Part shown: positions 5,655-33,866 of the stretch, piece by piece | How the letters are laid out: every line of letters starts with the position of its first letter | How positions within the stretch are numbered: position 1 is the first letter of the stretch | Sequence record: MH791411.1 | Length of the DNA: 64,000 nt | Direction: 5' to 3' (one strand) | The notes under the pieces: generated by a model | The model's input: only the letters and a program-made list of their open reading frames with translations | Database searches by the model: none | Told to the model about the DNA's origin: nothing | Made by a program: the position numbers and the translations under genes

Positions 5655-6155
5655 TTAGGTCACAGCTTTGTATTTCTCCATTGCTTCGGTGATATTCAAT
5701 ACTGCTTGCGGTACGTCACTTTTGTTGTATGCAATGGTTAGTTTTTCCATGTTATTGAGAAGACTTAGAAACAATGGAAGTACTTCTGCATTGTCACTGA
5801 AGTTACAATCATTGACAGTACTCAATTGAAATAACTCACCAGCATCAACATTGAGTGTGTTGTATTCTTTAACAATGTTTTCTTCAGTATTGAAGATGTA
5901 GAATACAGTCCCCATGTGGTGTAAGTATACACCAGTATCATTCTGAATATGACATGGGGTGATTACAATTGCTGTGTTATCAATATTATTTACTATTGTC
6001 AAACGCAGACTATGTAACCCAAAGATTACAGTACAATCCTTTGTACTGTGTTGGATCTGGTCACTAGTAAAGGAAGACCCACTATGATTTTTAGATCCAT
6101 TTAGTATTTCTTTGATAATTTTAAATGAATACTTCATCGAATTAGTTAAAAGCAT
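5655..6155 (-). CDS. Family A paralogue
   Basis: AGELFQLSTV. Confidence 0.8.
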   Translation of the reverse strand: MLLTNSMKYSFKIIKEILNGSKNHSGSSFTSDQIQHSTKDCTVIFGLHSLRLTIVNNIDNTAIVITPCHIQNDTGVYLHHMGTVFYIFNTEENIVKEYNTLNVDAGELFQLSTVNDCNFSDNAEVLPLFLSLLNNMEKLTIAYNKSDVPQAVLNITEAMEKYKAVT

Positions 6156-6555
6156 GAACTTTACCTTTAAGTAAATTAATTAATGATCGCATAGATTCAG
6201 TACTGACAGTACCAAAATCAACACCTAAGCACTCGTATTGAAAGAACTCAATAGAATCAATTGAGTCCAAAGGAATCTCAACAACCTGATTCCCTATACC
6301 AGACATAGTAACATTGCTTTTATTAATCGTCAAGAAGTTTTTTGAATAAGTATTAAATTTTAGTGAAATCGCATCGGGGTGCTTTGTAACAATGCAGTAC
6401 TGGGAGCCATACACATATAGTACTTTACTTTCACTAAGATCCGTTTTAAAAAAATGAATCCCATTGAAGTATTTCTCATTGGCTCCCATCGCCGCGATTA
6501 GTTCATCTGTTGTTGTTAACCTTGTTTCGTTCTTCGTTAAACTGTTGAAAAGCAT
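6142..6555 (-). CDS. Family A paralogue
   Basis: SIEFFQYECL. Confidence 0.7.
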   Translation of the reverse strand: MLFNSLTKNETRLTTTDELIAAMGANEKYFNGIHFFKTDLSESKVLYVYGSQYCIVTKHPDAISLKFNTYSKNFLTINKSNVTMSGIGNQVVEIPLDSIDSIEFFQYECLGVDFGTVSTESMRSLINLLKGKVHAFN

Positions 6556-6976
6556 AGAATACTACCTTAACCATTTGTAGTGTTTCAGACATTACTTCTG
6601 ATGAAAATTCAACATCATTGAATTTCAGCATAGTGTTCTGTGTAAAGAAAGTTGCTTCTAAGTCTTCCAGATTGAAGGGTTCATCAAACAAATTAGTACT
6701 GAACATGTCAGTCTTCTTCTTGTATGTGAACAAGAATTTGGAATTATAACGAAGAACTATTTCATCTTTATTAACCAAAATACGTGCAATGTTTTGACGT
6801 GTCAATGTGGTAATGTTTAAATTGAACACGTTCTTGCGTGTTTCAGTGATATCAACAAAATACCCATCTCCCTGATGGATATTACATCGTACATCCAACC
6901 CTTTCTGTACTGTATTGAACAGTGCATCTTGAATAAAATAATTTGCTGTATCGATGTTTCCTAAAATGTCTAACAT
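6503..6976 (-). CDS. Family A paralogue
   Basis: LEATFFTQNTM. Confidence 0.65.
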   Translation of the reverse strand: MLDILGNIDTANYFIQDALFNTVQKGLDVRCNIHQGDGYFVDITETRKNVFNLNITTLTRQNIARILVNKDEIVLRYNSKFLFTYKKKTDMFSTNLFDEPFNLEDLEATFFTQNTMLKFNDVEFSSEVMSETLQMVKVVFYAFQQFNEERNKVNNNR

Positions 6977-7488
6977 AACTTCTCCTTGATTGCTGTCATA
7001 TTTAGAAGAAATTCTTCAAGCAATTCCTCTGTAACATACTCAACATACCAGAATATCACAATATCTTTTGAAAGTCGAGTATTCTTAAAAATATCTACTA
7101 ACTCTTTGTAGTACTCAAGATCATATACATCTTTTATAATTAGTGAGTACTGAAATAGTGATTCTTCAGTTAACTTAAATTCTGGATATAGTAAGTCATT
7201 AAATTCTAATGATTCTGATTGTACTTTTATTTTAGTGAAGTCATTTGTTAATCCACCATTACATCCATATAATGCAGCGTAATTCACGAACTTGGCTTTT
7301 GGATTAAAATCAAGAACAGTTTCACCATTATATGACAATCGGTGGAACGCCGTGAACTTTGTAATTTGCCACGGTTGCTTAATATCTAAGTCATTTATGT
7401 CTTTATTATTGTACATAAGAACAGTGAATATTTCAGCAATCTTCAATAATAATTTAGTACGTGCTAGTACTGTCATAGGTTCAATCAT
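6970..7488 (-). CDS. Family A paralogue
   Basis: EESLFQYSLI. Confidence 0.8.
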   Translation of the reverse strand: MIEPMTVLARTKLLLKIAEIFTVLMYNNKDINDLDIKQPWQITKFTAFHRLSYNGETVLDFNPKAKFVNYAALYGCNGGLTNDFTKIKVQSESLEFNDLLYPEFKLTEESLFQYSLIIKDVYDLEYYKELVDIFKNTRLSKDIVIFWYVEYVTEELLEEFLLNMTAIKEKLC

Positions 7489-7901
7489 TATACACCTTCA
7501 TATTCATCAAGGAAATCTTCGATGATCATTTCTGCGTCATCCATGTGCATAGCATCAACTTCGACAATGCGAACCTTAGACGTATCCCAAATCATATAGC
7601 TAGAAACTGTATCTGGTTCGTAATCGTTTTTGTACTGAACTGCATCATAGCCGTTAATTTCGCAGTACTCAATCACTCCACGCCATTCGTCATCACTGCC
7701 CATATCCGTCCACAGAAGCACGTTATCAACATCAACTTCTAAGGTATGTAAGTATACTGTATCAGCGTCAACAACGTTCAGTGGGCTTCTAAGCTTGCGT
7801 AATGCAGCTTCTAAAGCACTGTGTTTACCTCCCATATGAAGACCACCATACGGGATATAAAAGTTATCAATTTTTACAGTACTCGCATGATACAGTTTCA
7901 T
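7488..7901 (-). CDS. ADP-ribosyltransferase-fold protein (ART-PolyVal-like)
   Basis: MKLYHAS, GGLHMG, GYDAVQYKNDYE..SYMIWD. Confidence 0.55.
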   Translation of the reverse strand: MKLYHASTVKIDNFYIPYGGLHMGGKHSALEAALRKLRSPLNVVDADTVYLHTLEVDVDNVLLWTDMGSDDEWRGVIEYCEINGYDAVQYKNDYEPDTVSSYMIWDTSKVRIVEVDAMHMDDAEMIIEDFLDEYEGV

Positions 7902-7910
7902 AATTCATTC

Positions 7911-8495
7911 CTATTTCAGTACTTTGACCAGGGCTTTAACCGCTGTTTCAAGTTGTGCAAAGTCGTTGATTGTAAGATAATGAATACCCAATGTACTCAT
8001 TTCTGAATCTATTTTACTATACAAATCGAACATGTCAAGTAGATATTGATATGTATATGACTCCGATGACACACATGATTCTTGAAATAGACGTTCTTCC
8101 ATATCATTTACTACTTCATCATTTGCGTCTCGAATCACACCATCTTTGTATGTGTAGTAAATCTCATCCCATTCATCTGATAAGCGGAATAGTAAAGGTT
8201 TACCATTAAACATCTCAAGGTCATATGCATTGACTTCACTCAATAACATATCATCAGGATCAGGTGTGAAATCGAATTGAGCGAGTGAAGAACCATCATA
8301 ATCCTTAAGGAATACACCAATAGCATTCAATTTAACTTCGCCATAATTGCCATTCTTGAACTTTACACGAATATTAATATCAATGTTTTGAACAGTATCA
8401 TCATCTTGGAATTGATAATCAATTTTATACTTTTCCCAAAGTTTTTTAATATCTTTAAAGTACTTAATTTTACTTTCTATTTCTTTAAAGTTCAT
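7911..8495 (-). CDS. Family A paralogue
   Basis: EERLFQESCV. Confidence 0.8.
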   Translation of the reverse strand: MNFKEIESKIKYFKDIKKLWEKYKIDYQFQDDDTVQNIDINIRVKFKNGNYGEVKLNAIGVFLKDYDGSSLAQFDFTPDPDDMLLSEVNAYDLEMFNGKPLLFRLSDEWDEIYYTYKDGVIRDANDEVVNDMEERLFQESCVSSESYTYQYLLDMFDLYSKIDSEMSTLGIHYLTINDFAQLETAVKALVKVLK

Positions 8496-9087
8496 CTGGA
8501 ACCGCCATCTCTTGTATGTTCTTGCATTTTATCATTGCACAATTAGTATGTAAAATGATAGCGTACTTGTGTAATGATTTAATTTTATAACACTCATTAA
8601 GTACTGAAATGATGCCCCATAACTCTTCTACATCAATAGTGATAGGTTCACTAGTACTAAGTTGCATTAGTGCTGCTTCCACATCATCTTTGTTATTGAT
8701 TTTGAACTGCATACCACGTTTCAGTATTTTGGTTTTTGGGTTATACTCTGCCATTACATCACCTTCAGGGTAACCCTCGTGTAATAATAATGTAGTCTCA
8801 TAATCTCCACAATTGAAATTAATTTCATCATAGTCAGGAACACAAATCATTCCTTCACCATATTGATTATCTACTGATTCGATTGTTAAAATACGCTGAT
8901 GTTCATTACTCAGGATAATAGAATCATGCCAGTACTGCGTAGTGAATTTACTACGTTTCTTTTGACAGCACATACTTGACATGGGACCATACTTTTTATA
9001 TAGGGACTTCTTGAATGCTATCGCATCAGGAGCCACCTTAATAACTTCTCGAATTAGGTCAATAGCTTCTTGATAACTTTTTCTCAT
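8485..9087 (-). CDS. Family A paralogue
   Basis: EAALMQLSTS; start reassigned to MRKSY. Confidence 0.7.
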   Translation of the reverse strand: MRKSYQEAIDLIREVIKVAPDAIAFKKSLYKKYGPMSSMCCQKKRSKFTTQYWHDSIILSNEHQRILTIESVDNQYGEGMICVPDYDEINFNCGDYETTLLLHEGYPEGDVMAEYNPKTKILKRGMQFKINNKDDVEAALMQLSTSEPITIDVEELWGIISVLNECYKIKSLHKYAIILHTNCAMIKCKNIQEMAVPDEL

Positions 9088-9635
9088 TTGTCGTACCCAT
9101 ATAAAATATGATCTAGTGTGCATTGTACTTCTTCATGGAAGAACAGTGGGTAAATTTGTATCAATTTTTCTTTAAGTTCAAGTGAATGGCATAATTCTAA
9201 TGCTTTGATACAATCTTCATATTGAACTAAGCTATGTATTGTACTTAACTGGAAATGTTGTTCTTCAGAGTAAGCTAAATCATATACCAAATTATCATCT
9301 AAAAGGTTTGATTTCTTTGAAGGATCAAGTACTGTGTTGCTATGACCTACCCAGAAAAAAGCATTGGTGTTCATATTATTACAACCCCAACCTGCCCCCA
9401 TTTTCTGGTGAATAGCAAAGACACAACTATCATAGAGATTAATACCAAGACGTTCTTCGTTGACATAAATCGTAACACCATCGATTGTCATGGTTATTTG
9501 GAAACGCATTGAACCTTCACTTCGTGAACGTGCACAGAAGCCAAGATAACGGTTAATAATTGTATTGATTTTATCTGCCCATCCTTCCACATCTTTGGAT
9601 GCACATAATTTAAAAAGATCATGACTTTGATTCAT
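9084..9635 (-). CDS. Family A paralogue
   Basis: EEQHFQLSTI. Confidence 0.8.
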   Translation of the reverse strand: MNQSHDLFKLCASKDVEGWADKINTIINRYLGFCARSRSEGSMRFQITMTIDGVTIYVNEERLGINLYDSCVFAIHQKMGAGWGCNNMNTNAFFWVGHSNTVLDPSKKSNLLDDNLVYDLAYSEEQHFQLSTIHSLVQYEDCIKALELCHSLELKEKLIQIYPLFFHEEVQCTLDHILYGYDK

Positions 9636-9646: not shown

Positions 9647-10228
9647 TTAATCAAGCATAAGTGGCATCATCGCCCATATCTTTTTCATAATCATATCTTC
9701 AGTAAAAACAAACGTTTTAGGTGCAGTATATGATATTGACAACCCAAATGGAAGTACGATTGCATCATCAATTATATTATGAATATCAAACCATGTTTTT
9801 ACACAATCATATGGTGGAAGTTCATGTATTGTACTTAACTGAAAGTATTGTTCTTCACCAAATGTACTGCAATCAATATCACAAATTTTAGTGAATTGAT
9901 GATTCCATTTAGATATAATACTGTTTTTATTATTGAACATATTAGTTCTATGCATGAAACCATTTCTGCTAATATGATTTGATATTGCGTTTTCTTCAAT
10001 ATCATTGCTTATTTTAAAATTCATGTCAAAGTTGTAGTGCGAACTCGACGATTCTTTGAATTTTAAATGAAAATAACGATTGTTATTAATTTCCATTTCA
10101 ATACAAAACACATCCGAATCAAAACGATTAAACTTGTAATCGTTGTCTTCAGGTAGAGTCTGTAGTTTTTTCATAACACCAAGCATAGGGTGCACTAAGC
10201 TTCTAATAAAATCATTAGTTATTTTCAT
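9647..10228 (-). CDS. Family A paralogue
   Basis: EEQYFQLSTI. Confidence 0.8.
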   Translation of the reverse strand: MKITNDFIRSLVHPMLGVMKKLQTLPEDNDYKFNRFDSDVFCIEMEINNNRYFHLKFKESSSSHYNFDMNFKISNDIEENAISNHISRNGFMHRTNMFNNKNSIISKWNHQFTKICDIDCSTFGEEQYFQLSTIHELPPYDCVKTWFDIHNIIDDAIVLPFGLSISYTAPKTFVFTEDMIMKKIWAMMPLMLD

Positions 10229-10721: not shown

Positions 10722-11146
10722 GTTTTGTCTCTTAATGAAAGAATATCCTTAGTATAAACTGAAACTGAAATATGATTATATTTCATCATTAATTTATACA
10801 CATAAGAAGCTAGTACTAAATCGTAAATTAATTTAGTATCATACAGTACTCCGTATTGTAAAGCAAGTGAATCAATATCATCTTTACTTTCAATATCCAG
10901 AAATGTGCCGAAATATGTAGTACCGTAGAGATGAAAATTGGAATTAATGCAATCAATGCATTCATTGTCCAACAGAGTAGATGATGATGCCCTCGGTGAA
11001 TCCCAAATAGTCACTGCGTGTATGCCCTCAACGAACAAATCTATCCATATTTTGTGTCGTTGTCTTTTTTTTGTTTTATAATTTTCTGGATTTGAAAGTG
11101 TAGTTTCAATTATATCCCATATGTATAAGCATTCATCTCTTGTCAT
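10718..11146 (-). CDS. Divergent family A paralogue
   Basis: DSLALQYGVL, weak motif. Confidence 0.55.
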   Translation of the reverse strand: MTRDECLYIWDIIETTLSNPENYKTKKRQRHKIWIDLFVEGIHAVTIWDSPRASSSTLLDNECIDCINSNFHLYGTTYFGTFLDIESKDDIDSLALQYGVLYDTKLIYDLVLASYVYKLMMKYNHISVSVYTKDILSLRDKT

Positions 11147-11724
11147 TATAGCACCTTATCCATTGCTGCATTTAATGCTTTTAAACGATCAACATTCAAA
11201 GTATTGAAGATGTACGTTCCTAAAATGTGGAAATCGAACTGGTACTTTTTGTATGTGTGATAAATTAAACTACAAAAAATAACAGTACTAAGAACCTCTT
11301 CAGGTATAACGGTGCTCATCTGAAACAGTTCTTCATCAACTGTACTTGATTCTGGATTGATAGCTTTTAACTCATACTCTTTATCACCGAATAGTACTTT
11401 AATATTATATAAAACACCAACAGTACTAATATGAAATGGATGGTGTGAAAAACTTCCATCATCATTAATTTGGATATCGGATCTAATCTCGCACTCTTCA
11501 TTACTTTTACTATTATTTTTTACAATACAAATATTCCTGGCACCAGAAATAGTAAGAATACCGTGATCGTAATATTCTTTGGACATACATTTAGATGAAA
11601 ATGACACATCACGAATGAGGTAATGTTTGTTAATTTCTTTGGCACTACCAACAATGTGTAGCATCTTTGTACTGATATCATATAGCTGTTGGTGTCGGGC
11701 TGTCATATAACTATAAGCGTTCAT
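11146..11724 (-). CDS. Family A paralogue
   Basis: DEELFQMSTV. Confidence 0.8.
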   Translation of the reverse strand: MNAYSYMTARHQQLYDISTKMLHIVGSAKEINKHYLIRDVSFSSKCMSKEYYDHGILTISGARNICIVKNNSKSNEECEIRSDIQINDDGSFSHHPFHISTVGVLYNIKVLFGDKEYELKAINPESSTVDEELFQMSTVIPEEVLSTVIFCSLIYHTYKKYQFDFHILGTYIFNTLNVDRLKALNAAMDKVL

Positions 11725-12295
11725 ATGTATCCTTGATGTTTTTGATTGCCGTGTGTAGCTCTTTTAATGTATCGGATTCACAGTTAATGAACTTACTATA
11801 CATTACCAATTCACCAGTGTCAATAGCTTTTGCAGTTTCATAGCAAAGCATCATGTACTCAAACTCCTTGAAGTTGTCAAGTACTGATCTCTGGAAAATG
11901 TATGCTTCACGAATGTCTTCACTTTGATCTAGTTCTGGTGGAATTTCCAAATATGTATCATTCTCTACGTCATCAAAATTAGATTCAACAATTCGATTAA
12001 TATCTTCGTGTAAAGCATTGACAAATATCATGTTTGGAGTAATGGAACCAATTCGCTCACTATGCCTTGATGTACGGATATACATTGCCATAGTATCCCA
12101 TGAACCTTTTTTTGTCGTTCCATAATCGTAAACTTTATAAGACTCCAGTACTACTGAACCAAAACGATATGGTGATTTGCATTCAACTTTAAGACGATAA
12201 TTTCCAATAGGCTCATGTTCAGTAATGTTGTGCTTTTCAGATAGTTCTGCAATGTCATGCATCAATTTCATAATTTGAATGTGTTCAGCTTGCAT
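11711..12295 (-). CDS. Family A paralogue
   Basis: EAYIFQRSVL. Confidence 0.75.
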   Translation of the reverse strand: MQAEHIQIMKLMHDIAELSEKHNITEHEPIGNYRLKVECKSPYRFGSVVLESYKVYDYGTTKKGSWDTMAMYIRTSRHSERIGSITPNMIFVNALHEDINRIVESNFDDVENDTYLEIPPELDQSEDIREAYIFQRSVLDNFKEFEYMMLCYETAKAIDTGELVMYSKFINCESDTLKELHTAIKNIKDTYERL

Positions 12296-12858
12296 TATAA
12301 GTCCTCTAATTTAACAGGTACATGTTCATTGATGAACGTCTTAAGAGCCAGTACTAGATCTTCTAATTCTTCTGTACTGAATTTTAATATAGTTTTAAAG
12401 ATTATCAATTCATTTCTTTCTATAATCTTTGGAATTTCATATGCTAACATAAGATTGCGAACAGTACCAGCGTTGTGTATGAGGTTCGCATTGAATAAAA
12501 GTACATCGTACTCGTCTTTTTTAATTTTATAATTGTACTCTTCAATTACTTCATGTGTGTATGTATTCTTATAAGCAATTTTATTTTTATGAAATTTATA
12601 ACCAACAGTAACACTATCATCATAAAATGTAGAACGATAATCTTGTTTTCTATCGCCGGACGAAATGATGTGTAATGCGGTGTATTTGTCCTCAACATCT
12701 AACTCAATGTTTGCATAACTGTTAACAGTTTCATTCTTTAGGACATTAATGTTATATTTCTCATTAACTTTAATGTACTGGCGTGCACCATTATCATCAA
12801 TGAACTTAAAACAATGCTTTATCAACAATGTGATTTCTTTAATTAATTCAGTGCTCAT
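12295..12858 (-). CDS. Divergent family A paralogue
   Basis: DVLLFNANLI, weak motif. Confidence 0.55.
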   Translation of the reverse strand: MSTELIKEITLLIKHCFKFIDDNGARQYIKVNEKYNINVLKNETVNSYANIELDVEDKYTALHIISSGDRKQDYRSTFYDDSVTVGYKFHKNKIAYKNTYTHEVIEEYNYKIKKDEYDVLLFNANLIHNAGTVRNLMLAYEIPKIIERNELIIFKTILKFSTEELEDLVLALKTFINEHVPVKLEDL

Positions 12859-12885: not shown

Positions 12886-12947
12886 ATTATAACACACCTG
12901 AATGCTCATGTAAAGCACTAAACACAAAAAGACCCATAAGGGTCTTT
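12886..12947 (-). promoter_or_regulatory. Terminator (12926-47) followed by sigma70 promoter
   Basis: AAAGACCC/GGGTCTTT stem; TTTACA-17-TATAAT at 12909-14/12886-91. Confidence 0.8.
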
Positions 12948-13530
12948 ATTTTGGTAAAACGCTGTCAATGTACGCTAGAGCCTCATCTCGGAGGTACGTT
13001 CCATCTATTGTTATGTAATAATTCTTAGGGATATCACTCCCAATCTTCTCGTAAATTTTCATACATGATATCACATCTTCATCACAAATGGTACTCAATT
13101 GAAACTGTACTTCATCAGTTAAAGGTACGATATCATGTTTAGATGGGGGGTTGGTATTTTCATTCAAAACAATATCAAACAAATTAGGAGTATTCTTTGA
13201 CGAAATGTAACGATGTTTACTACGAATTACCATTCTCGACAGAGAAATACTGGAACTCCATCTTTGGTCCACATCTTCGTATGTTAACGCAATTAACATT
13301 TCATAATAATCTTGGAATTTCATTGATGCATAATATGTTTTGTCCTCACCGTACATTCCAAATGATTTGAATTCAATGTCACCTACATTGTGTGTATCGC
13401 TATCACTATTCACGAATTTTAAAAGACTGTTGATTAGTCTGATTAGAATATCATCTTTATTCATTATCAGATAACTCCCTGTGCATGTTGTATAAATCTC
13501 TAAAGTCCTGATAGAAATCTTTTTCTTCAA
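12946..13530 (-). CDS. Family A paralogue
   Basis: DEVQFQLSTI. Confidence 0.8.
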   Translation of the reverse strand: MKKKISIRTLEIYTTCTGSYLIMNKDDILIRLINSLLKFVNSDSDTHNVGDIEFKSFGMYGEDKTYYASMKFQDYYEMLIALTYEDVDQRWSSSISLSRMVIRSKHRYISSKNTPNLFDIVLNENTNPPSKHDIVPLTDEVQFQLSTICDEDVISCMKIYEKIGSDIPKNYYITIDGTYLRDEALAYIDSVLPK

Positions 13531-14023
13531 GAATATCTTTTAAACTAGGAATCTCATCCATAATCTCATCGATATCAGTTTCAATAGTAAAACCTGATTT
13601 ATAATTTTGTAAGAGATAACTAAAAGCAACAAGATAAAGAATTTCATTTGGTTTATGAATTAACATGTGTTGGAACATAACTGATTCTAAATCAGATTCA
13701 GTACTAAGGTCAGCATAACATGTATCGTTGGTGTCAATTCGTACTGTACTTGAATTTGGATTCCATGTAAAGCAATGTGTTCCAACTGTTCCCAAACATC
13801 CTACTCTTGTACTATCATTTGTTCCCAAAAAGATATAAAAATACGTTTCATCTGTATAATCGTATTTTTGTACTTTACCTTTTTTAAGGCATAAATCATT
13901 ATCCTTTCGAAAAGTTTTAGATGATAGTGTATCAATGATGCACATTAATGTTTTTGCAAATGCAATACAATGACGTAATTCAAGTCTATGGAAATTATAA
14001 TTAGTAAAATTCATAAAATTCAT
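13457..14023 (-). CDS. Family A paralogue
   Basis: ESVMFQHMLI. Confidence 0.7.
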   Translation of the reverse strand: MNFMNFTNYNFHRLELRHCIAFAKTLMCIIDTLSSKTFRKDNDLCLKKGKVQKYDYTDETYFYIFLGTNDSTRVGCLGTVGTHCFTWNPNSSTVRIDTNDTCYADLSTESDLESVMFQHMLIHKPNEILYLVAFSYLLQNYKSGFTIETDIDEIMDEIPSLKDILEEKDFYQDFRDLYNMHRELSDNE

Positions 14024-16738: not shown

Positions 16739-16797
16739 TGTGATATAACCCTTTACAATTAATATAAAGAGATTATATCACAAAGATTTGGAGGGTG

Positions 16798-25437: not shown

Positions 25438-25992
25438 TTAGCACCCTTTAACAACTTTTGAAATGTAATCTTCTAATGCACCAATGTTCTTTGTATTCGT
25501 TCGAACTAAAAGATAACTTAAATTCTCGAACTCCTGAACATAATGCTTAACAGCGTACATGCATCGTAATTCAAAATCTGTATGAACCGTTTTGTACTGA
25601 AATAACATCTCTTCTGAAGCCTCTAAAAGCTCTGTAGCTTGTTCTGTACTGAACTTAAAGGGATTCTGTACTCCTGAACTAAAACACTTTTGTTCGTTCG
25701 TCTGGACACCCTGTGATAGATATAATCCTGTACTACCATCTTGTGTTGATATCGAATTGAAACCATTACTTGCAACCATTAAATCTGAACTCAATACAAA
25801 TAATAATTTATCTTCCTTATGAATTAATAAATCTGACTTCAGGGATTTTATTCCTGTACTGGTTATATCACCTATACTAAGATTGTCACTGAACTTCTCA
25901 GCGTTGTTCGCAATGCTCTGGACAAGATTTTTTAATCTCTTAATGGCACTTCTGTCTTTTTCTAATGTATCTAATAAACTCATTGAACTCAT
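25438..25992 (-). CDS. Family A paralogue
   Basis: EEMLFQYKTV; start reassigned to MSSMSLL. Confidence 0.75.
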   Translation of the reverse strand: MSSMSLLDTLEKDRSAIKRLKNLVQSIANNAEKFSDNLSIGDITSTGIKSLKSDLLIHKEDKLLFVLSSDLMVASNGFNSISTQDGSTGLYLSQGVQTNEQKCFSSGVQNPFKFSTEQATELLEASEEMLFQYKTVHTDFELRCMYAVKHYVQEFENLSYLLVRTNTKNIGALEDYISKVVKGC

Positions 25993-26002
25993 TGTACTTT
26001 CC

Positions 26003-26347
26003 TTACATATTTGTACCGAACAAAACGGAACTTTGAATGCCATTAATCGACACTTCATGTACATATATATTTTGTCTGAATACCTGAAGCAATTGAACTA
26101 AACTCTGTTGCATAATAATATGCATCGCTAAATTATCAAAGGCCGTTTCGTGTTGGAATCGTGCAGCTTCATCTTCTATGAAATTCGGAACTTGGACTGG
26201 ATTCTCAAAATTTGTCCTTGTACTGAACTGTACATCATTGTCCTGTACCTTAATACCATATGAATTATCATTGTTATCAACTACATCAAATTCAATTAAA
26301 CTACCATCTTTACTGACGTTTACTATATAAACTGAAAATCTACTCAT
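26003..26347 (-). CDS. Family A paralogue
   Basis: EAARFQHETA. Confidence 0.65.
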   Translation of the reverse strand: MSRFSVYIVNVSKDGSLIEFDVVDNNDNSYGIKVQDNDVQFSTRTNFENPVQVPNFIEDEAARFQHETAFDNLAMHIIMQQSLVQLLQVFRQNIYVHEVSINGIQSSVLFGTNM

Positions 26348-26862
26348 AATCCTATTTCCTTTAAATCTTCCAAAAATGTTTCATAATCACTTAAGGAAAA
26401 AAAGATATCCGTATCGATGTTCGCATCTAATACATTATACAAATTCTGCATCTGTAACACATCAGGAGCATCAATCAATGATTGCTGGAAATATGCAGCT
26501 TCATCTTCTAAAATATCCCTGAATGTTCTCTCTCGTACTCTGTGGTGTACTGAATTGAATATTGATTTCTCATCCTTAAGCATTGGTAGGTATCGAATGT
26601 ACATGTGTTCTCTTAGCTCAGGACTGATGGAACCCCTGAACTGTAACACGTATTCGAAGCACATAGCAACATCCTGAAGGTAATTGGCACTGTAATTATT
26701 GCTGTAAACAATCTTATGACTTCTGAACTCATCATCATTTCTGAACCAATTGTCACCTACTTTGGTGTACTTATGACTAAGCAATCCACCCTCTAACGCT
26801 TTGATGATCTTCAAAATGTTGTGTGCAAATGCATATGATGTATTGTACTTGGCCTGATACAT
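26344..26862 (-). CDS. Family A paralogue
   Basis: EAAYFQQSLI; start reassigned to MYQAKY downstream of promoter TTAACA-17-TATAAT (26929-34/26906-11). Confidence 0.8.
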   Translation of the reverse strand: MYQAKYNTSYAFAHNILKIIKALEGGLLSHKYTKVGDNWFRNDDEFRSHKIVYSNNYSANYLQDVAMCFEYVLQFRGSISPELREHMYIRYLPMLKDEKSIFNSVHHRVRERTFRDILEDEAAYFQQSLIDAPDVLQMQNLYNVLDANIDTDIFFSLSDYETFLEDLKEIGL

Positions 26863-26875
26863 GTGTGCCTCAACC

Positions 26876-27070
26876 TTATCTTGTGTTAAAATATTCACTG
26901 AAATGATTATAACACAAAAGCACCACGATGTTAAGCACTCTGTTGTCAAAATCATCTTGTGATGTAGGATGCAATGACGCATTGATGTTAAAATTCACTA
27001 TATCATTGTGGAATTGGTATGTGAACAAATCAAACTTCGTATGCCTTTGTTTGATATCATAGGCGGTCAT
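26876..27070 (-). CDS. Small hypothetical protein
   Basis: 64 aa ORF. Confidence 0.55.
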   Translation of the reverse strand: MTAYDIKQRHTKFDLFTYQFHNDIVNFNINASLHPTSQDDFDNRVLNIVVLLCYNHFSEYFNTR

Positions 27071-27071: not shown

Positions 27072-27680
27072 TTATATATTCAACCCTTTAACAATGGAAA
27101 TAAATTCTTTGTAAACATTTTCAGGTAAAGCTCTACTACCATAAAGAACACTAAATTCAGGTAACATATCCGAAATCTCTTTCGCTAAATTTATTTCATC
27201 CCTGAACATTTGCACAGGCATGATATCCTGTACCAATGATAACTGAAAGAAAAATGATTCAATATCTTCATGCACCTCTGAATTTAAATAAATCTCTTCT
27301 GGAAACTGGGCTGTACTGTAATAATAAAATACGTCAATTCTTTTTTCATTATTTTGTACAAGAGGTAAATTTCTTTCGTCTCTCTTATTAATATTTGTTT
27401 TCCATGACTCAATGTTATTCGGAACCCAAAACTCATAAGGTGTCTTCTCTCCTGAAATATTATCCAGCTTCAATCCATAATATTCACTTTCGCCGTACTT
27501 TTGCTTCAAAACAATACCTGTACTACTAATGTTTACAATGTACGTATCAACAATCCCTTCTGTGGTAAAAGGAATATTTAACTCTGAACCTTCAGGGTAC
27601 TTAGCATTGAATGCATCTAATGCTTTACTTAGCACTGGAATTGCACTTGCACTGTACTTCATTAATTGGTCTATGTTCAT
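27072..27680 (-). CDS. Family A paralogue
   Basis: ESFFFQLSLV. Confidence 0.8.
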   Translation of the reverse strand: MNIDQLMKYSASAIPVLSKALDAFNAKYPEGSELNIPFTTEGIVDTYIVNISSTGIVLKQKYGESEYYGLKLDNISGEKTPYEFWVPNNIESWKTNINKRDERNLPLVQNNEKRIDVFYYYSTAQFPEEIYLNSEVHEDIESFFFQLSLVQDIMPVQMFRDEINLAKEISDMLPEFSVLYGSRALPENVYKEFISIVKGLNI

Positions 27681-28252
27681 TTTAATTCCCCTGTAATCAC
27701 TGCATTTACTGCACTTGATGCAAATAAACTGATATTTGAACGATACATATCGTACACTGTACTTTCTTTCTTGTGCACAATGAAATCATAAAGATCAACA
27801 AATGCAGGAATAATAATCTTGAATGATTTATTTGGGTACGTCCCAAAATCAACTGTACTCAATTTTGCAACGAGCATAACAACAAAGATTTCTTCTGGAC
27901 TATACACTGTACTGTACTGAAAATAATCCTCTGCACTCATGGCACTCATTGCATTTATATCTTGTGTTTGTAATGTAATATTAAGACAATCAAAAATATA
28001 ATAAAACTCTGATTTGTTTTGTATTTTGTATTTGTCAATTGGGGTATCTCTCATGAACCATAAACGATCTTGTCCATAAAAAGGAATGATTGAATTTGGG
28101 GAAGCCAGAAATACTTCTTCTCTATCAATATCCTTTAACTCAATTTGCATACCGGATGAATTGGCAATAATTAATTCATTAAAAATATAATGAACCTTGT
28201 GTACAATCTCTTGTACTGAATTGAAATCATCTGGTATTTTAAAATTTTCCAT
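27677..28252 (-). CDS. Family A paralogue
   Basis: AEDYFQYSTV; start reassigned to MENFKI. Confidence 0.8.
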   Translation of the reverse strand: MENFKIPDDFNSVQEIVHKVHYIFNELIIANSSGMQIELKDIDREEVFLASPNSIIPFYGQDRLWFMRDTPIDKYKIQNKSEFYYIFDCLNITLQTQDINAMSAMSAEDYFQYSTVYSPEEIFVVMLVAKLSTVDFGTYPNKSFKIIIPAFVDLYDFIVHKKESTVYDMYRSNISLFASSAVNAVITGELK

Positions 28253-28277
28253 AGGTATCTCCTTAAAATGATTACAC

Positions 28278-28338
28278 ATTGTACCATGCATTTGTACTCG
28301 TGTCAAACAAAAAAAGCCCATATCTTACGATACAGGCA
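28278..28338 (-). promoter_or_regulatory. Terminator (GUAA tetraloop) followed by sigma70 promoter
   Basis: GCCTGTATC-GTAA-GATATGGGC-T7; TTGACA-17-TACAAT at 28301-06/28278-83. Confidence 0.85.
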
Positions 28339-28822
28339 TGTTTATTTGAATTTCATTGTACAAATCATCAATATATAGACATGAAAACGATAAACTTTCT
28401 TTAACTATATTGTTGTGATAAAGCATTTTAAATGCAATATAGAAAAATAAATCAATATCATCATGTACTAAATTCTGCTGGAACCACCACTCTTCTGTTA
28501 AATCTTGTGCATTAAAATCATCAGGAACTACAATTGACGACATATCAGCATCTTCTTTGTACTCAAACCACATGTCGTCATTTGGATAACGTTCATGCTT
28601 CTCTGGGTAACAATTGCTGGGATTAAATGCTAAAATATAAAATGCCGTCGCAGAATGTTCTTTATTATAAAATGAATTATTCCACACCTGATACCTTTCA
28701 CCAACATCAAACTCTTTTGATACTGATGTTATTGCACATAATGTACGATATATTGTTTCTATTTTGTGAACAAATTTAAAGGCTGCATCTAAACTGAACT
28801 CTAAATCAGACATGCGGTGCAT
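28325..28822 (-). CDS. Family A paralogue
   Basis: EEWWFQQNLV. Confidence 0.8.
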   Translation of the reverse strand: MHRMSDLEFSLDAAFKFVHKIETIYRTLCAITSVSKEFDVGERYQVWNNSFYNKEHSATAFYILAFNPSNCYPEKHERYPNDDMWFEYKEDADMSSIVVPDDFNAQDLTEEWWFQQNLVHDDIDLFFYIAFKMLYHNNIVKESLSFSCLYIDDLYNEIQINMPVS

Positions 28823-29142
28823 AAAATTACCTCAACTAAAATAAGAACGGTATTGAATTCGATGCAACCTTTGATACCTTGATTGTACATGTACTTTGCT
28901 ACTACATATTTCTGTACTAAATTATAATTATTAAATTCCTCAAAATTGTAATTTAGAATGAAATTTGTACTCAAAAATAACTTATGCATCTCTAATGCAC
29001 TCTGATAATATTTGTACAACTCTCTGATATCAATACTTTGTAAATCACTTTGTTCATATCTATGATAAGGAATGGCTTCAATTTCAATACTATAAAACCA
29101 TTCTCTTAACTTCTTAATATCAAATGTATTATTCAGCTTCAT
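28801..29142 (-). CDS. Divergent family A paralogue
   Basis: FEEFNNYNLV, weak motif. Confidence 0.55.
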   Translation of the reverse strand: MKLNNTFDIKKLREWFYSIEIEAIPYHRYEQSDLQSIDIRELYKYYQSALEMHKLFLSTNFILNYNFEEFNNYNLVQKYVVAKYMYNQGIKGCIEFNTVLILVEVILCTACLI

Positions 29143-29698
29143 AACTCAATACCTCCATTAAGCACTCATAAACACCATCAATCGCATAAGCACAAAAACT
29201 GAAATTAATTTTGTTATTCTTGTGTAATGGACTATTGTATACTGTACTCAACATAACACTATAAAACAAAGAACGTTCATGTGTAAATAATGATTCCTGA
29301 AAAAATGCTTCCTCTGATTTAATTTTATTATATTCAATCGATTGATCATTAGAATAAAATGAATCTTGATTTGAATTGTACCATGTGTAATCCAAATCAT
29401 TCTTTGATATAACTGGTGTTGGATTAAACTGTAAAAGACTAATAACACTACGGGCATTTGGGGTATCAGGTGTATTGAATCGTTTGTCAAAATAACTTGT
29501 GCACGCAATATGTGAATCAAAATCAGATGGTTTAAACCCCATGAATGCGTTAATGATTCTTGTATATGGTTTTTTATTATGTGCTGCTTTCTGTACATTA
29601 TATAAGGCTGCAACAATACAAGCTAACTTTTGTCCCATTAGGATTGCATTAGCGTAGGTGTACTGAATTTCATTGCTGGTACGGTACTTCGAGATCAT
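29129..29698 (-). CDS. Family A paralogue
   Basis: EEAFFQESLF. Confidence 0.8.
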   Translation of the reverse strand: MISKYRTSNEIQYTYANAILMGQKLACIVAALYNVQKAAHNKKPYTRIINAFMGFKPSDFDSHIACTSYFDKRFNTPDTPNARSVISLLQFNPTPVISKNDLDYTWYNSNQDSFYSNDQSIEYNKIKSEEAFFQESLFTHERSLFYSVMLSTVYNSPLHKNNKINFSFCAYAIDGVYECLMEVLSYEAE

Positions 29699-30020
29699 GG
29701 AACAGCCTCACTTTGCCTAACTCGTCATTGGATATTAATTCGTTAACAGCTTTCTGTATATTCTTTAATAATAGCACATCAAATCCTTTTGTGTCAAGCA
29801 CACATTGCATTTGGAAGAATTCTTCTTCTGATAATGTATTAAAATCCACAAAATTGTCTAATATTACGTCATTATCCAAATGTGCCATGTACCATGTATT
29901 TCTTTCGGAGCGTTTGATAAAATTCCATCCATCTGGATAATCGGGTTCTAATTCTACATATATCCCTGATAATGTATAAAGCATTTTATACTTCATAACT
30001 ATTGTACTCATTGCTTTCAC
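29670..30020 (-). CDS. Family A paralogue (short type)
   Basis: EEEFFQMQCV; close paralogue of next gene. Confidence 0.8.
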   Translation of the reverse strand: MKAMSTIVMKYKMLYTLSGIYVELEPDYPDGWNFIKRSERNTWYMAHLDNDVILDNFVDFNTLSEEEFFQMQCVLDTKGFDVLLLKNIQKAVNELISNDELGKVRLFHDLEVPYQQ

Positions 30021-30328
30021 TGTACGTCGATGTCATAATACGCTCCTACCTCATAATCTTTCTTGCTTTGGAATTCATTAACGGCTTTCTGTATATTTCT
30101 TAATGTTACCATGTCATGTCCGTACATGTCAACCACCAATTGCATTTGGAAAAATTCTTCTTCAGATAATGTATTAAAATCTATAAAATAATCCGTAACA
30201 ACCTGTGCGTCTAAATTTGCCATGTACCATTGATTGGTATCGACCTCTTTAACCAAATTCCATGCATCTGAATCGGATTCTAATTCTACATATATTAATG
30301 TTAATGTATACAGCATTTTATACTTCAT
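30017..30328 (-). CDS. Family A paralogue (short type)
   Basis: EEEFFQMQLV. Confidence 0.8.
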   Translation of the reverse strand: MKYKMLYTLTLIYVELESDSDAWNLVKEVDTNQWYMANLDAQVVTDYFIDFNTLSEEEFFQMQLVVDMYGHDMVTLRNIQKAVNEFQSKKDYEVGAYYDIDVQ

Positions 30329-30878
30329 AACTATATCCTTGCATTAAAAGATCATAAGCAATATCAACTAATTCTAAACGAATGAAAAATTTTAAATTAT
30401 CTTTCAATGGATTCAAATGCATTGTACTAAACAACATAAGATACTTCATTTGATTTGTATTGTATATTAGGGATGTCTGAAATACTTCTGCTTCATTGTA
30501 AGGATCAATGAATTTTATACCTTCTTCACTATAATCCGTTTTGGAATTCTGATATATAAAATAATCATCACCATAATTGTACCACAAATAACCTTCAAAA
30601 CTGGAATCAAATTCTGAATTTTCATTTCGCATTAAAGGTGATACTGAAATTGGATTTGAACCAACTGTTGCACAAACCTCAATGAAAGCATCTTCATTTC
30701 CCTTAACTTCTTCTTTGATTTTATCATTGTACTGTCCTGCAAAACCAGCTTTTACTTCCAAATATAAACTACTCCCAACTTTATTAATTCTTAAAAGGGA
30801 ACTCTGTACTGTATTCGCATTGTCCAGCACTAACGATATTGTGCAAATCTTATGTACCAATAACTCAATATCATTCAT
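30318..30878 (-). CDS. Family A paralogue
   Basis: EAEVFQTSLIY. Confidence 0.8.
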   Translation of the reverse strand: MNDIELLVHKICTISLVLDNANTVQSSLLRINKVGSSLYLEVKAGFAGQYNDKIKEEVKGNEDAFIEVCATVGSNPISVSPLMRNENSEFDSSFEGYLWYNYGDDYFIYQNSKTDYSEEGIKFIDPYNEAEVFQTSLIYNTNQMKYLMLFSTMHLNPLKDNLKFFIRLELVDIAYDLLMQGYSYEV

Positions 30879-31872: not shown

Positions 31873-32036
31873 CTTATTAGATTATCAACGTATTGATCCT
31901 GTACTATTGTCCCTAGATAAAATGATACTTCGAACTCTGATAATTTTATATTGAAAGGATCTACATATACATCTTTAATAAACTCTTTGTACTTCAACAT
32001 ATATGCATTAGGTATATTCTTATATATCGATTTCAA
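31824..32036 (-). CDS. Family B paralogue
   Basis: YLGTIVQD. Confidence 0.75.
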   Translation of the reverse strand: MKSIYKNIPNAYMLKYKEFIKDVYVDPFNIKLSEFEVSFYLGTIVQDQYVDNLIRCMKKEIQCRPKGIKR

Positions 32037-32331
32037 TGATCCTCCCTGACATACCTTGTATTAGCTTATCATACATATCGAGCATCACTTTTTGAATACT
32101 AATTAATACTGGCATCGTGCAAATATCAATGTCGTATATTAAGCTGTACTGGAATAATTCCTCTTCCTGCATGTGTACTAAATTAGGTAAAAGATAATTG
32201 TCTGCCTCTTCATCCTGGTACTTGAAATGCATAACACCATCCTTTTTGTACAAAAGAATGTCAATATCACCTAACTCTTCTGCATAACCAAAAATACATA
32301 TACTCGATGTTTTTGCTATATTAAATTTCAT
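32020..32331 (-). CDS. Family A paralogue (short type)
   Basis: EEELFQYSLIY. Confidence 0.8.
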   Translation of the reverse strand: MKFNIAKTSSICIFGYAEELGDIDILLYKKDGVMHFKYQDEEADNYLLPNLVHMQEEELFQYSLIYDIDICTMPVLISIQKVMLDMYDKLIQGMSGRIIEIDI

Positions 32332-32340: not shown

Positions 32341-32691
32341 TTATATGTAGAATTCACATACGCGTTGAACAAAATTCTTTGGAAGATGACAATGTGCAAT
32401 CATCTGCTTTTGTACTTCCTTCATGTCTTCGAATGTAAATCCTAAAGAATCATCATGTACTAACAAGTACTGAAACTCTTCTTCTTCAGAGATAGAACAT
32501 AAATTCGGTACTGAAATTGTTTTTGCTTTTCTTGCACCCAATTTCCAATGAAAAGAATTATTGCATTTTCTGTACTCAAATATCTTCAACCCAGAACCTG
32601 TATTAAAATCAGCTACTACAATGTAACATGAATTCTTACGTACAATACAATTGAACTTACGCATTATCTCCACCTCTCTCCGTCTGTACAA
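32341..32691 (-). CDS. Family A paralogue (short type)
   Basis: EEEEFQYLLV. Confidence 0.8.
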   Translation of the reverse strand: MYRRREVEIMRKFNCIVRKNSCYIVVADFNTGSGLKIFEYRKCNNSFHWKLGARKAKTISVPNLCSISEEEEFQYLLVHDDSLGFTFEDMKEVQKQMIAHCHLPKNFVQRVCEFYI

Positions 32692-32909
32692 GAGTACTGG
32701 TACGTTGTCGTTAGGGTAGGGACCATGTTGGTAATGGGCATATTATTAACAATAACGGTAACAGGCATAAGTATCGTCTCTACTCTACTCTGTCCTGTCC
32801 TTGTGCAATTCATCTTTTGCATTTCATCGGACTCCATGAAATACAATACAAATGGTGCAATCCCAAGAACAATACACAAGACGATAAGGAAATTTAAAAA
32901 ATTCAACAT
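32664..32909 (-). CDS. Small membrane-anchored protein
   Basis: Hydrophobic N-terminus FLNFLIVLCIVLGIAPFVLYF; Cys pair in soluble part; promoter TTGACA-17-TATAGT at 32964-69/32941-46. Confidence 0.7.
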   Translation of the reverse strand: MLNFLNFLIVLCIVLGIAPFVLYFMESDEMQKMNCTRTGQSRVETILMPVTVIVNNMPITNMVPTLTTTYQYSCTDGERWR

Positions 32910-32970
32910 AATTTTCTACCCTAATGATTAACGTACAGGTACTATATCAGTAATGAAAAGTACTGTCAAG

Positions 32971-33345
32971 CTAGTATTGCACTGTTCTAATGAAAGTACC
33001 TTTACTCATGGATTTAAGCTTATGAACCTCTTCCTGTATACCCTTGATTAACCCTAAAGGTATAGGTACATCATGTACTAAGCTGTACTGAAAGTATTCT
33101 TCTTCAGATAAAGTACTAACATCTGGAATACCAATTTTAGTTATATAATCTTGATGTGTTGACCAATAAATTATATCTTCAGTACTATTGTACTCCCCAT
33201 ATACTGAACAATATTGATGAATATCTTTCATGTATCCTTGAGCAATAAAGAACTTATCTACTGCATTACCAGCATTAATAGAATTCACTTCGATTGTCAC
33301 AGTACTTGAGCTTGTTTTTCCTTTACTATGCATATTAATCCCCAA
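32971..33345 (-). CDS. Family A paralogue (short type)
   Basis: EEEYFQYSLV. Confidence 0.8.
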   Translation of the reverse strand: MGINMHSKGKTSSSTVTIEVNSINAGNAVDKFFIAQGYMKDIHQYCSVYGEYNSTEDIIYWSTHQDYITKIGIPDVSTLSEEEYFQYSLVHDVPIPLGLIKGIQEEVHKLKSMSKGTFIRTVQY

Positions 33346-33521
33346 ATTAGATATCGAACACTATCAGCTTGATAGTTAGTTCCTACTGTGTGTTTTAATA
33401 TTAACTCATCTTTCAGTACTGAACATTCTGCATTAGATATAGGAAGAGAATTAATTCTTTGAATTTCTGGTCGCAAAATACCGCGAAGCTTGCGGTAATC
33501 TTCGTATGATAATATTTTCAT
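33297..33521 (-). CDS. Family B paralogue
   Basis: TVGTNYQA. Confidence 0.8.
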   Translation of the reverse strand: MKILSYEDYRKLRGILRPEIQRINSLPISNAECSVLKDELILKHTVGTNYQADSVRYLIWGLICIVKEKQAQVL

Positions 33522-33524
33522 TGT

Positions 33525-33866
33525 TTAGTACTCAACGATGTGTTCTTCATAACCATTAAACTCCGGTTTAGTTTCTTTCATTAGGACTACCATTTTATGT
33601 ACTAATGGCATAGGAAATTCTAAATCCCATACTAATGATTCTTGAAAGTATTCTTCTTCAGATAAAGTACTTAAATCTTTAATATCAACGTGCTTGTATA
33701 TTTTATTTTCGTAATTAAGAAATGATATATATAAATCATTAACATCAGAATCATAAGTAATTGTGAATGGCTTACCCTTGTAGTCCATTACATCTTTACA
33801 TAGACTGCATTTGATATATGTATGTTCTTCTGAACTGTATACATTGAGTTGTATATTAGTTTTCAT
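33525..33866 (-). CDS. Family A paralogue (short type)
   Basis: EEEYFQESLVW. Confidence 0.8.
   Translation of the reverse strand: MKTNIQLNVYSSEEHTYIKCSLCKDVMDYKGKPFTITYDSDVNDLYISFLNYENKIYKHVDIKDLSTLSEEEYFQESLVWDLEFPMPLVHKMVVLMKETKPEFNGYEEHIVEY

Follow-up and report, generated by a model that had tools for sequence, protein, structure and literature searches.

Why should a jumbo phage carry several dozen small tandem genes whose products share one short motif and little else? The locus that raises this question, here called the family A array, lies at positions 5655–33866 of a 64,000-nucleotide window (the whole stretch of DNA analysed), which matches ~248–312 kb of Escherichia phage Ecwhy_1 (MH791411.1) at 100% identity. 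Ecwhy_1 is an Asteriusvirus, a PBECO4/121Q-like jumbo myovirus infecting E. coli. Other Asteriusvirus jumbo myoviruses are 86–98% identical to the window, and in the annotation of its relatives every gene at the locus is a 'hypothetical protein'. All genes between 0.3 and ~62 kb of the window are carried by the minus strand, and the G+C content of the array is ~32%. The original prediction, made from the sequence alone, described the genes as a library of variable cargo domains, each joined to a constant docking module that contains the motif. We propose that family A is a tandem expansion of one small single-domain scaffold, the members of which act as early cytoplasmic host-interaction or anti-defence proteins, a reading to which we assign a probability of about 0.5.

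The motif family was found where it had been placed. Among minus-strand open reading frames (ORFs) of at least 60 aa that start within 5655–33866, 35 of 67 contain FQ.S, compared with a mean of 1.3 and a maximum of 7 in 1000 per-protein shuffles, and with 1 of 97 ORFs elsewhere in the window. A stricter pattern, E[ED]..[FYW]Q.S[LTVIMA], occurs in 19 ORFs where 0.008 would be expected. An all-against-all phmmer comparison joins 32 ORFs, an iterated hidden Markov model (HMM) search collects 43, and leave-one-out (LOO) HMMs back 41 of these 43 at an expectation value (E) below 1e-3; the remaining two, 27072–27680 and 3813–4106, are borderline, and the second lies beyond the range of the array (Table 1). 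Six further ORFs, at 6142, 8485, 10215, 11711, 12295, and 26003, are possible members with degenerate motifs, for which hhalign gives no separation from control ORFs. Two of the six, 11711–12295 and 12295–12858, are joined to each other by phmmer, while hhalign again performs no better than with controls. Motif-poor ORFs of the array likewise reach hhalign probabilities against the family profile no better than those of control ORFs and hence were not counted.

Based on these profile searches, family A probably comprises about 41–49 members rather than the 54 motif-bearing ORFs first proposed (41 firm, two borderline, and about six possible). ORF 2098–2946, which had been listed as an outlying member, was rejected, as its motif-like string DELMFQLMLTG is outside the C-terminal third and its hhalign probability is 2%. 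Firm members account for 70% of the 28.2 kb, a share that rises to 80% when possible members are added; a few genes of a second family, family B (described below), and unrelated small ORFs are found among them. The genes are closely packed, with overlaps at 49 of 66 junctions.

The ORFs of the array that are unsupported as members include 7488–7901, 14020–14562, 18032–18634, 10718–11146, 28801–29142, and 31212–31622. All six match PHROGs of their own, without assigned function, and are kept in phAPEC6, which belongs to another Asteriusvirus species cluster. Several contain eroded motif-like strings, such as MERIKFSLS in 14020–14562, and some of these ORFs may be members that have lost the motif. 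The largest gaps in the array, 24711–24868 (158 bp) and 25275–25437 (163 bp), flank two small unrelated ORFs (24869–25274) and contain G+C-rich hairpin-like strings.

Over 212 family sequences the motif has the consensus [ST]-E-E-x-[YLHF]-F-Q-x-S-[TL]-[VIL]-[YH]-[DNST], in which Phe is conserved in 211, Gln in 208, Ser in 190, and the two Glu in 171 and 181. As originally described, the motif is near the C-terminus and is followed by a helix: the invariant Phe sits 40–81 residues (median ~51) from the C-terminus, preceded by an N-terminal part of 59–164 residues, and the helix after the motif spans residues 121–135 in a model of a long member. The upstream part is barely alignable at the sequence level, also as described, since the N-terminal parts alone give just 10 phmmer links, which define four small subfamilies, and jackhmmer adds nothing to these. 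Mean column identity in family A is 15%, and only Phe and Gln are invariant among 28 long members. The descriptive part of the original prediction, a constant C-terminal element with a far more variable N-terminal two-thirds, is thus borne out.

The proposed architecture is not. AlphaFold2 models were made of one long member (21681–22172, 163 aa) and one short member (23941–24300, 119 aa), representing the two size classes (28 long forms of at least 140 aa and 15 short forms). Both are single compact alpha/beta domains (scores in Table 1). The long form contains a helix (residues 3–22), seven strands (28–97), a short helix (99–103), and the motif helix (109–115), followed by a helix (121–135), a strand with the conserved FY[LF]D (141–144), and a final helix (145–152). 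The short form contains five strands, the motif helix (66–75), a helix (84–100), and a terminal strand (109–117). Common to both models is a core ordered as beta-sheet, motif helix, long helix, and terminal strand, and as modelled the short form is the core of the long form minus its N-terminal helix. All members are predicted to share one fold, to which the long forms add the N-terminal helix and extra strands.

Comparisons of structure and sequence point the same way. Foldseek aligned the long-form model over its full length with paralogues and orthologues of 13–29% identity, for example a 121Q protein (E 1.5e-11, template modelling score (TM) 0.75/0.83) and RaK2 H6X4L9 (target-normalised TM 0.75). 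An HMMER scan of 1.84 billion representative proteins gave 137 clusters, all of 55–208 aa and nearly all with end-to-end alignments, and in none of these 137 representative homologues is the motif module joined to another domain. One-domain models, full-length Foldseek matches, and end-to-end homologues lacking fusions argue against a build of variable cargo plus docking module. The original prediction had named as its own refutation one globally homologous fold with the motif buried in its core, together with members that share no partner; of these, one globally homologous fold is what the two models predict.

Within this fold the motif appears to have a structural role. Ser, Thr, Asp, and Asn are classic helix N-cap residues. 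Numbering from the invariant Phe as 0, position -5 is one of these four in 182 of 212 sequences and position +7 in 162 of 212, and we infer that the two positions N-cap the motif helix and the following helix, respectively. In the long-form model the motif falls in the blocks of top confidence (predicted local distance difference test score (pLDDT) 97–98), and its helix runs from residue 109, directly after Ser108. Plotted on a helical wheel, positions -4, -3, 0, +3, and +4, which are conserved, would lie within 60 degrees of the invariant Phe, with the free positions -2 and +2 opposite. This is the pattern of an integral, packed helix of the domain rather than of a free docking peptide. Because the motif is modelled in these high-confidence blocks and starts right after an N-cap Ser/Thr, it is likely part of the domain and no linear tag.

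A docking function could nevertheless be retained on such a fold. Family A might be an adaptor library in which the E-E/F-Q/S face and the next helix dock to a single partner, which might be a hub of the host or the phage or else a protease, for example the phages' ClpP-like protein, and the variable sheet recruits targets. The four polar residues of this face are conserved far above the rest, the motif keeps a nearly fixed distance from the C-terminus beside a variable N-terminal part, and the C-terminal part is more acidic than the N-terminal part and evolves somewhat slower (pooled nonsynonymous divergence (dN) 0.126 vs 0.175). Moreover, ClpP-like genes are annotated in RaK2 (ORF489) and in Klebsiella phage fENko-Kae01 (ENKO_123). 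However, the long-form model shows the motif as a structured helix, within the stretch predicted with most confidence, and not as an exposed linear peptide; capping and core roles can account for its conserved positions, and no partner is known. The short and long forms also differ in the helix and strand after the motif, which would confine any docking surface to the motif itself. We therefore regard an adaptor library as rather unlikely. A particular version, in which the E-E/F-Q/S face lets ~45 paralogues deliver different host proteins to one machine (e.g., the ClpP-like protease), seems to us less probable again; if it were true, the array would be a phage-encoded adaptor library for the targeted removal or blocking of host factors. 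In RaK2-like phages the ClpP-like gene lies among early/metabolic genes, apart from the T4-type prohead protease.

The same modelled helix bears on a second possibility, that the motif is a processing site cut after Gln. The site of the potyvirus NIa protease (that of tobacco etch virus, TEV) is ENLYFQ, and the pattern E-x-x-Y-x-Q is matched by Glu at -4, Tyr at -1 (in 103 of 212 sequences), Phe at 0, and Gln at +1, corresponding to P6, P3, P2, and P1. The residue after Gln is variable, though, and the conserved Ser comes one position later, at P2'; the segment is helical, at pLDDT 97–98 in the long-form model, unlike a cleavable loop. No Gln-specific protease was identified, though no protease search was made, and the prohead protease annotated in phAPEC6 (gp227c) is of the T4 gp21 type. 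T4 gp21 cuts after Glu. Processing at the motif is thus highly improbable, and the likeness of E-E-x-Y-F-Q (residues 109–114 of the 21681–22172 product) to the TEV site is probably a coincidence.

Conserved acidic and polar residues could also indicate an enzyme family, with Glu-Glu, Gln, and Ser as the active site. We consider this very unlikely. The alignment contains no other conserved catalytic-type residue, and searches of Pfam, NCBIfam, PDB sequences, and PDB folds gave no match to any enzyme. It would also be unusual for ~45 paralogous enzymes to differ so far in their substrate-binding parts that these cannot be aligned.

Database searches agree with the original statement that no function has been described for these proteins. 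Neither the members singly nor the whole alignment gave a consistent match in Pfam, NCBIfam, or PADLOC. PDB sequence-profile searches with both alignments returned nothing below E 0.1, and Foldseek found no significant PDB fold match for either model (best E 6.4 and 0.027, TM below 0.35). Matches of the short form to folds resembling the platform of major histocompatibility complex (MHC) proteins (E 0.03 or worse, TM ~0.2) were rejected as a generic sheet-plus-helices resemblance. SUKH-type and other immunity folds (Syd, SMI1/KNR4) gave no match in Pfam, PDB folds, or PDB sequences. DNA-mimic anti-restriction proteins of the Ocr and ArdA type gave no PDB fold or sequence match either, and the range of isoelectric points (pI) in family A reaches 9.1.

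The matching PHROGs (phrog_9317, 12674, 28549, 19795, 28680, 34636, 35776, 15629, and 13866) are all of 'unknown function'. For nine of ten members tested, the profile matches are full-length, with E between 1e-62 and 1e-116; the tenth, 33525–33866, matches phrog_13866 partially (E 5.8e-9). The PHROG groups hit by family A cross-match each other, and on this profile evidence about ten separate 'unknown' groups of RaK2-like phages are one superfamily with a simple diagnostic motif, which PHROGs splits into many. Sequence and structure relatives were found only in RaK2-like jumbo phages and similar metagenomic contigs; those with models in BFVD are from 121Q, SP27, RaK2, GAP32, Serratia BF, Yersinia fHe-Yen9-03/04, and Erwinia pEa_SNUABM_47. 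Two of the metagenomic contigs, L003 and L004 (G+C 29% and 39%), again carry tandem arrays, one of them with short forms before long forms, as here. The RaK2 record showed no array in its first 50 kb and last 50 kb (100 of 346 kb scanned), and RaK2 ORF003, considered as an array member, was rejected because it is a single-copy conserved gene located elsewhere in these genomes. In the literature searched, we found no functional description of these genes beyond a single sentence that mentions tandem duplication in 121Q, and no description of the motif, fold, placement, or superfamily status of family A.

The position of the array in the genome is a further clue to its role. Among relatives whose genome ends have been determined by experiment, fEgEco12 is the closest; it has a direct terminal repeat of 20,993 bp (PMC13070987). 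The reverse complement of the window is colinear with the first 30 kb of fEgEco12, and the inner boundary of the repeat, at fEgEco12 position 20,993, maps to window position ~39,912. Along transcription from the physical end, the order is therefore the terminal repeat (~60.9–39.9 kb), family B (39.8–33.9 kb), and family A (33,866–5,655). Klebsiella phage fENko-Kae01, which belongs to another genus and also has determined ends, encodes at least 19 members directly after its repeat end at 19,736, and two extra members ~10 kb past the main array (45,125–46,762 in record coordinates). The family A array thus adjoins the direct terminal repeat in two genera, pointing inward, and the family, its tandem layout, and its repeat-adjacent position are old and conserved.

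Family B, which lies directly inside the terminal-repeat boundary, consists of 31 tandem minus-strand paralogues of 63–94 aa with a common LGTxxQ-type motif. They occupy 33856–39814, and some copies are scattered among family A, at 19169–19556, 31588–32036, and 33297–33521. Family B has no Pfam match, and its PHROG, 4148, is 'unknown'.

Closest paralogues of family A tend to be neighbours on one strand, which argues for tandem duplication. The best paralogue of a member lies at a median rank distance of 3, compared with 13 in permutations (minimum 6), which shows a lineage-specific tandem expansion. Reciprocal best hits in the same order were found in phAPEC6 for 40 of 43 members, with a median amino-acid identity of 75% for family A, 87% for family B, and 95% for the terminal-repeat genes. 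Between Ecwhy_1 and phAPEC6, family A orthologues have a median ratio of nonsynonymous to synonymous divergence (dN/dS) of 0.28, a value that shows purifying selection. Their dS ranges from 0.01 (23084–23575) to above 2 (17339–17677 and 18625–19221) and exceeds 1 in 12 of 40 genes. The array is thus a mosaic in which some alleles were shared recently and others diverged long ago, and the wide range points to repeated replacement of single genes by diverged alleles, a process common at conflict loci.

These data bear on whether the array is duplicated filler with little individual function, or whether its products are subunits of a single large, mixed assembly joined through their conserved C-terminal helices. 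Adjacent genes are the closest paralogues, and Hua et al. (2017), who noted tandem duplication arrays in 121Q and phage G, interpreted those of 121Q as growth of the genome by duplication (PMC5646251). However, the order kept by 40 of 43 paralogues and a dN/dS of ~0.28 show that each paralogue is individually maintained, with which neutral filler does not fit, and both the family and its position are conserved across genera. We consider filler or a mixed assembly improbable. The remark of Hua et al., which concerns the same phage genus and includes no analysis of motif, fold, position relative to the repeat, or function, most likely refers to the 31 small similar genes of family B, in comparison with which family A is far more diverged.

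The best matches to sigma-70 promoters in the region (12/12 and 11/12; Table 1) sit in the few intergenic gaps of the array, from which host RNA polymerase may transcribe the genes early. Such timing is supported by analogy with the related phage PA5oct, in which terminal-repeat genes are early (PMC7318152). Family A proteins are aromatic-rich and soluble-looking, with a median pI of 4.84. The arrangement resembles that of known first-entering DNA. The T5 pre-early region and the SPO1 terminal-repeat module are early host-takeover blocks at the end that enters first. They and the leading regions of plasmids are similar to this locus in having small same-strand genes at or in the terminal repeat, with host-type promoters. 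Among these, the plasmid regions are reported to contain genes against host defences (bioRxiv 10.1101/2023.02.15.528439). In contrast to family A, where one family fills most of 28 kb, such takeover and anti-defence blocks hold many unrelated genes.

An early-type position and early-type promoters would not be expected if the proteins were packaged, one of the options that the original prediction had raised, with the T4 internal proteins as its analogy. The T4 internal-protein peptide is N-terminal, is cut by gp21, and directs packaging. If family A were comparable to T4 IPI-III, its shared peptide would target the prohead and the proteins would be injected with the DNA. Both groups do consist of several small proteins with a short shared conserved peptide, family A provides many small acidic paralogues with one motif, and phAPEC6 capsids have an inner body (PMC7247149). 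Unlike the T4 peptide, the family A motif is not an N-terminal cleaved peptide but an internal predicted helix toward the C-terminus. Moreover, mass spectrometry of purified phAPEC6 virions found 62 proteins, none of which is a family A orthologue (~gp404c–gp466c) (PMC7247149). A crude >300 kDa preparation of fENko-Kae01 yielded 158 phage proteins that passed the inclusion criteria, and of the 21 members only one was flagged there, weakly. The analogy therefore does not carry over, and packaging of family A has a very small probability.

Returning to the proposal of an expanded single-domain scaffold, we envisage family A proteins as acidic, soluble, single-domain alpha/beta proteins of ~100–215 aa in RaK2-like phages (Asteriusvirus and related genera). 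The motif would mainly be a structural hinge. It would begin with an N-cap residue and two acidic residues in the first turn of the helix, continue with an aromatic pair whose invariant Phe lies on the helix face that is conserved, and pass through a short linker to the residue that N-caps the following helix. The sheet and loops would have diverged freely between paralogues. Host RNA polymerase would transcribe the array early from near-consensus sigma-70 promoters in its few gaps. Each paralogue would then bind or block a different host component, either a defence system or a takeover target, and the array as a whole would be a library of binders on one scaffold.

Several points weigh against this proposal. 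No member has a function shown or a target known. Conservation of the two Glu, Gln, and Ser (171–208 of 212) exceeds that usual for helix capping, so a conserved functional surface is also conceivable. Over whole genes, dN/dS stays far under 1, giving no direct sign of an arms race within paralogues. The timing of expression is deduced from position and promoter matches, and as the total number of promoter matches is not above shuffled expectation, it is their placement that is informative. The alignments used for modelling were drawn from the family itself, so the agreement of the two models is not fully independent. Lastly, virion mass spectrometry can miss small proteins of low copy number.

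Tandem multigene families at the ends of large viruses are already known, and 'genomic accordions' have been discussed for large phages (PMC13359090). Like family A, poxvirus-type families of this kind have tandem paralogues near the genome ends, vary the surfaces of a single scaffold, and are presumed to interact with the host. The two are unrelated in sequence and fold, and in contrast to genomic accordions family A consists of old, stable, ordered orthologues under purifying selection with no recent burst in copy number.

Table 1. Members of the family A array and associated promoter and boundary features, in window coordinates. Members are listed along the direction of transcription with their motif strings; LOO E is the leave-one-out HMM expectation value, and pTM the predicted template modelling score.
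Feature	Position	Strand	Evidence
Family A array: 41 firm, 1 borderline, ~6 possible members	5655..33866	-	phmmer, HMM, LOO HMM, motif counts
Short form, 113 aa, SEEEYFQESLV; first member along transcription	33525..33866	-	LOO E 1.6e-13
Short form, 124 aa, SEEEYFQYSLV	32971..33345	-	LOO E 8.9e-12
Short form, 116 aa, SEEEEFQYLLV	32341..32691	-	LOO E 9.2e-8
Short form, 103 aa, QEEELFQYSLI	32020..32331	-	LOO E 6.5e-10
Long form, 186 aa, NEAEVFQTSLI	30318..30878	-	LOO E 3.4e-8; phrog_19795
Short form, 103 aa, SEEEFFQMQLV	30017..30328	-	LOO E 8.6e-9
Short form, 116 aa, SEEEFFQMQCV	29670..30020	-	LOO E 3.8e-10
Long form, 189 aa, SEEAFFQESLF	29129..29698	-	LOO E 1.9e-6
Long form, 165 aa, TEEWWFQQNLV	28325..28822	-	LOO E 3.7e-7
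Long form, 214-aa ORF, SAEDYFQYSTV	27677..28321	-	LOO E 2.5e-7
Borderline member, 202 aa, IESFFFQLSLV	27072..27680	-	LOO E 0.011; self-inclusive HMM E 2.4e-14
Long form, 212-aa ORF, true start probably near residue 41, DEAAYFQQSLI	26344..26982	-	LOO E 1.5e-7; phrog_28680 matches residues 41-212
Long form, 208-aa ORF, SEEMLFQYKTV	25438..26064	-	LOO E 4.2e-8
Short form, 137-aa ORF, DDAALFQEALV	24297..24710	-	LOO E 8.7e-12
Short form, 119 aa, DEAELFQESLV; short-form AlphaFold target	23941..24300	-	LOO E 6.6e-14; pLDDT 81.9, pTM 0.79
Short form, 119 aa, DDVELFQASLV	23585..23944	-	LOO E 1.3e-8
Long form, 163 aa, SEEYYFQQSTV	23084..23575	-	LOO E 8.2e-23
Long form, 156 aa, SEEFYFQQNTI	22612..23082	-	LOO E 1.3e-12
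Long form, 146 aa, TEEYYFQQSLI	22175..22615	-	LOO E 2.5e-14
Long form, 163 aa, SEEYYFQNSTV; long-form AlphaFold target	21681..22172	-	LOO E 2.6e-24; pLDDT 85.2, pTM 0.82
Long form, 147 aa, SEEYYFQNSTL	21263..21706	-	LOO E 3.4e-20
Short form, 104 aa, HETFLFQESLV	20952..21266	-	LOO E 3.3e-4
Long form, 149 aa, SEDAYFQYSTI	20503..20952	-	LOO E 8.3e-10
Long form, 148 aa, TEEGYFQGSTV	20067..20513	-	LOO E 1.6e-10
Long form, 178 aa, FDEQCFQLSCT	19534..20070	-	LOO E 3.5e-4
Long form, 198-aa ORF, TEENIFQNSLM	18625..19221	-	LOO E 4.2e-5
Short form, 119 aa, QEDELFQESLV	17667..18026	-	LOO E 6.2e-10
Short form, 112 aa, DTGELFQESLV	17339..17677	-	LOO E 2.8e-5
Long form, 196-aa ORF, NEENYFQQSLL	16798..17388	-	LOO E 1.1e-10; phrog_28549
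Long form, 160 aa, SEEEFFQYSTL	16256..16738	-	LOO E 7.2e-13
Long form, 160 aa, TEEMYFQGSCI	15777..16259	-	LOO E 8.6e-17
Short form, 119 aa, SEEELFQESTV	15425..15784	-	LOO E 5.7e-9
Short form, 137 aa, TPDELFQYSLV	15028..15441	-	LOO E 5.5e-5
Long form, 164 aa, SEESYFQNSLI	14546..15040	-	LOO E 2.3e-15
Long form, 188 aa, degenerate motif LESVMFQHMLI	13457..14023	-	LOO E 3.3e-4
Long form, 194-aa ORF, TDEVQFQLSTI	12946..13530	-	LOO E 2.4e-7
Two possible degenerate members: 11711-12295 EAYIFQRSVLDN and paralogue 12295-12858	11711..12858	-	Broad HMM E 0.0019 and 0.17
Long form, 192 aa, VDEELFQMSTV	11146..11724	-	LOO E 1e-8
Long form, 193 aa, GEEQYFQLSTI	9647..10228	-	LOO E 6.5e-6
Long form, 183 aa, SEEQHFQLSTI	9084..9635	-	LOO E 2.1e-4
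Long form, 194 aa, MEERLFQESCV	7911..8495	-	LOO E 1.5e-4
Long form, 172 aa, TEESLFQYSLI	6970..7488	-	LOO E 1.5e-4
Long form, 166 aa, DAGELFQLSTV; last member along transcription	5655..6155	-	LOO E 8.8e-6
Borderline member beyond the array range, 97 aa, NDENMFMLAIN	3813..4106	-	LOO E 0.029; self-inclusive HMM E 7e-8
249-bp gap with terminal-repeat inner boundary (~39,912) and 10/12 promoter 39872-39845 facing families B and A	39815..40063		fEgEco12 mapping (PMC13070987), promoter scan
11/12 sigma-70-type promoter, extended -10, intergenic gap	32941..32969	-	Promoter scan and sequence reading
Perfect sigma-70-type promoter, TTGACA, 18 nt, TGnTATAAT, in rare intergenic gap	16772..16801	-	12/12 matches
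Terminator-like hairpin, then 11/12 extended -10 promoter (12914-12886), intergenic gap	12886..12947	-	Promoter scan and sequence reading
11/12 sigma-70-type promoter, extended -10	3802-3775	-	Promoter scan

The surroundings of the array differ from it in layout. The region ~39,912–60,900, the counterpart of the fEgEco12 repeat, contains small genes spaced by ~80-bp gaps, in contrast to the overlapping genes of the array. Annotations of terminal-repeat genes in relatives include a spackle-like protein, a DksA-like zinc finger, a GNAT acetyltransferase, and a putative protein kinase, the last of these (44165–44806) with a weak Pkinase match (E 0.005). Just downstream of the family A array, 329–853 encodes a Dam-type DNA N6-adenine methyltransferase (Pfam PF05869, E 6e-33). 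A third tandem family, at 62167–63940, comprises nine neighbouring minus-strand ORFs of 61–77 aa joined by phmmer; it lies past the repeat's outer edge, at the point where GC skew switches sign, and the two of its ORFs tested had no Pfam match.

Most jumbo-phage genes are without known function, and here ~8% of a 355-kb genome is a single protein family (28 kb, with ~6 kb of family B alongside). Judged from sequence, this investment and its conservation imply a substantial role early in infection. What is new is a stable phage array of ~45 members with a fold that lacks a significant Foldseek match in the PDB. Recognition of the superfamily improves the annotation of RaK2-like phages, several of which have been proposed for therapy. 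If the members bind proteins of host defence or housekeeping, the array would provide a ready set of ~45 natural inhibitors on one scaffold and would parallel, in a phage, the multigene families that large eukaryotic viruses carry.

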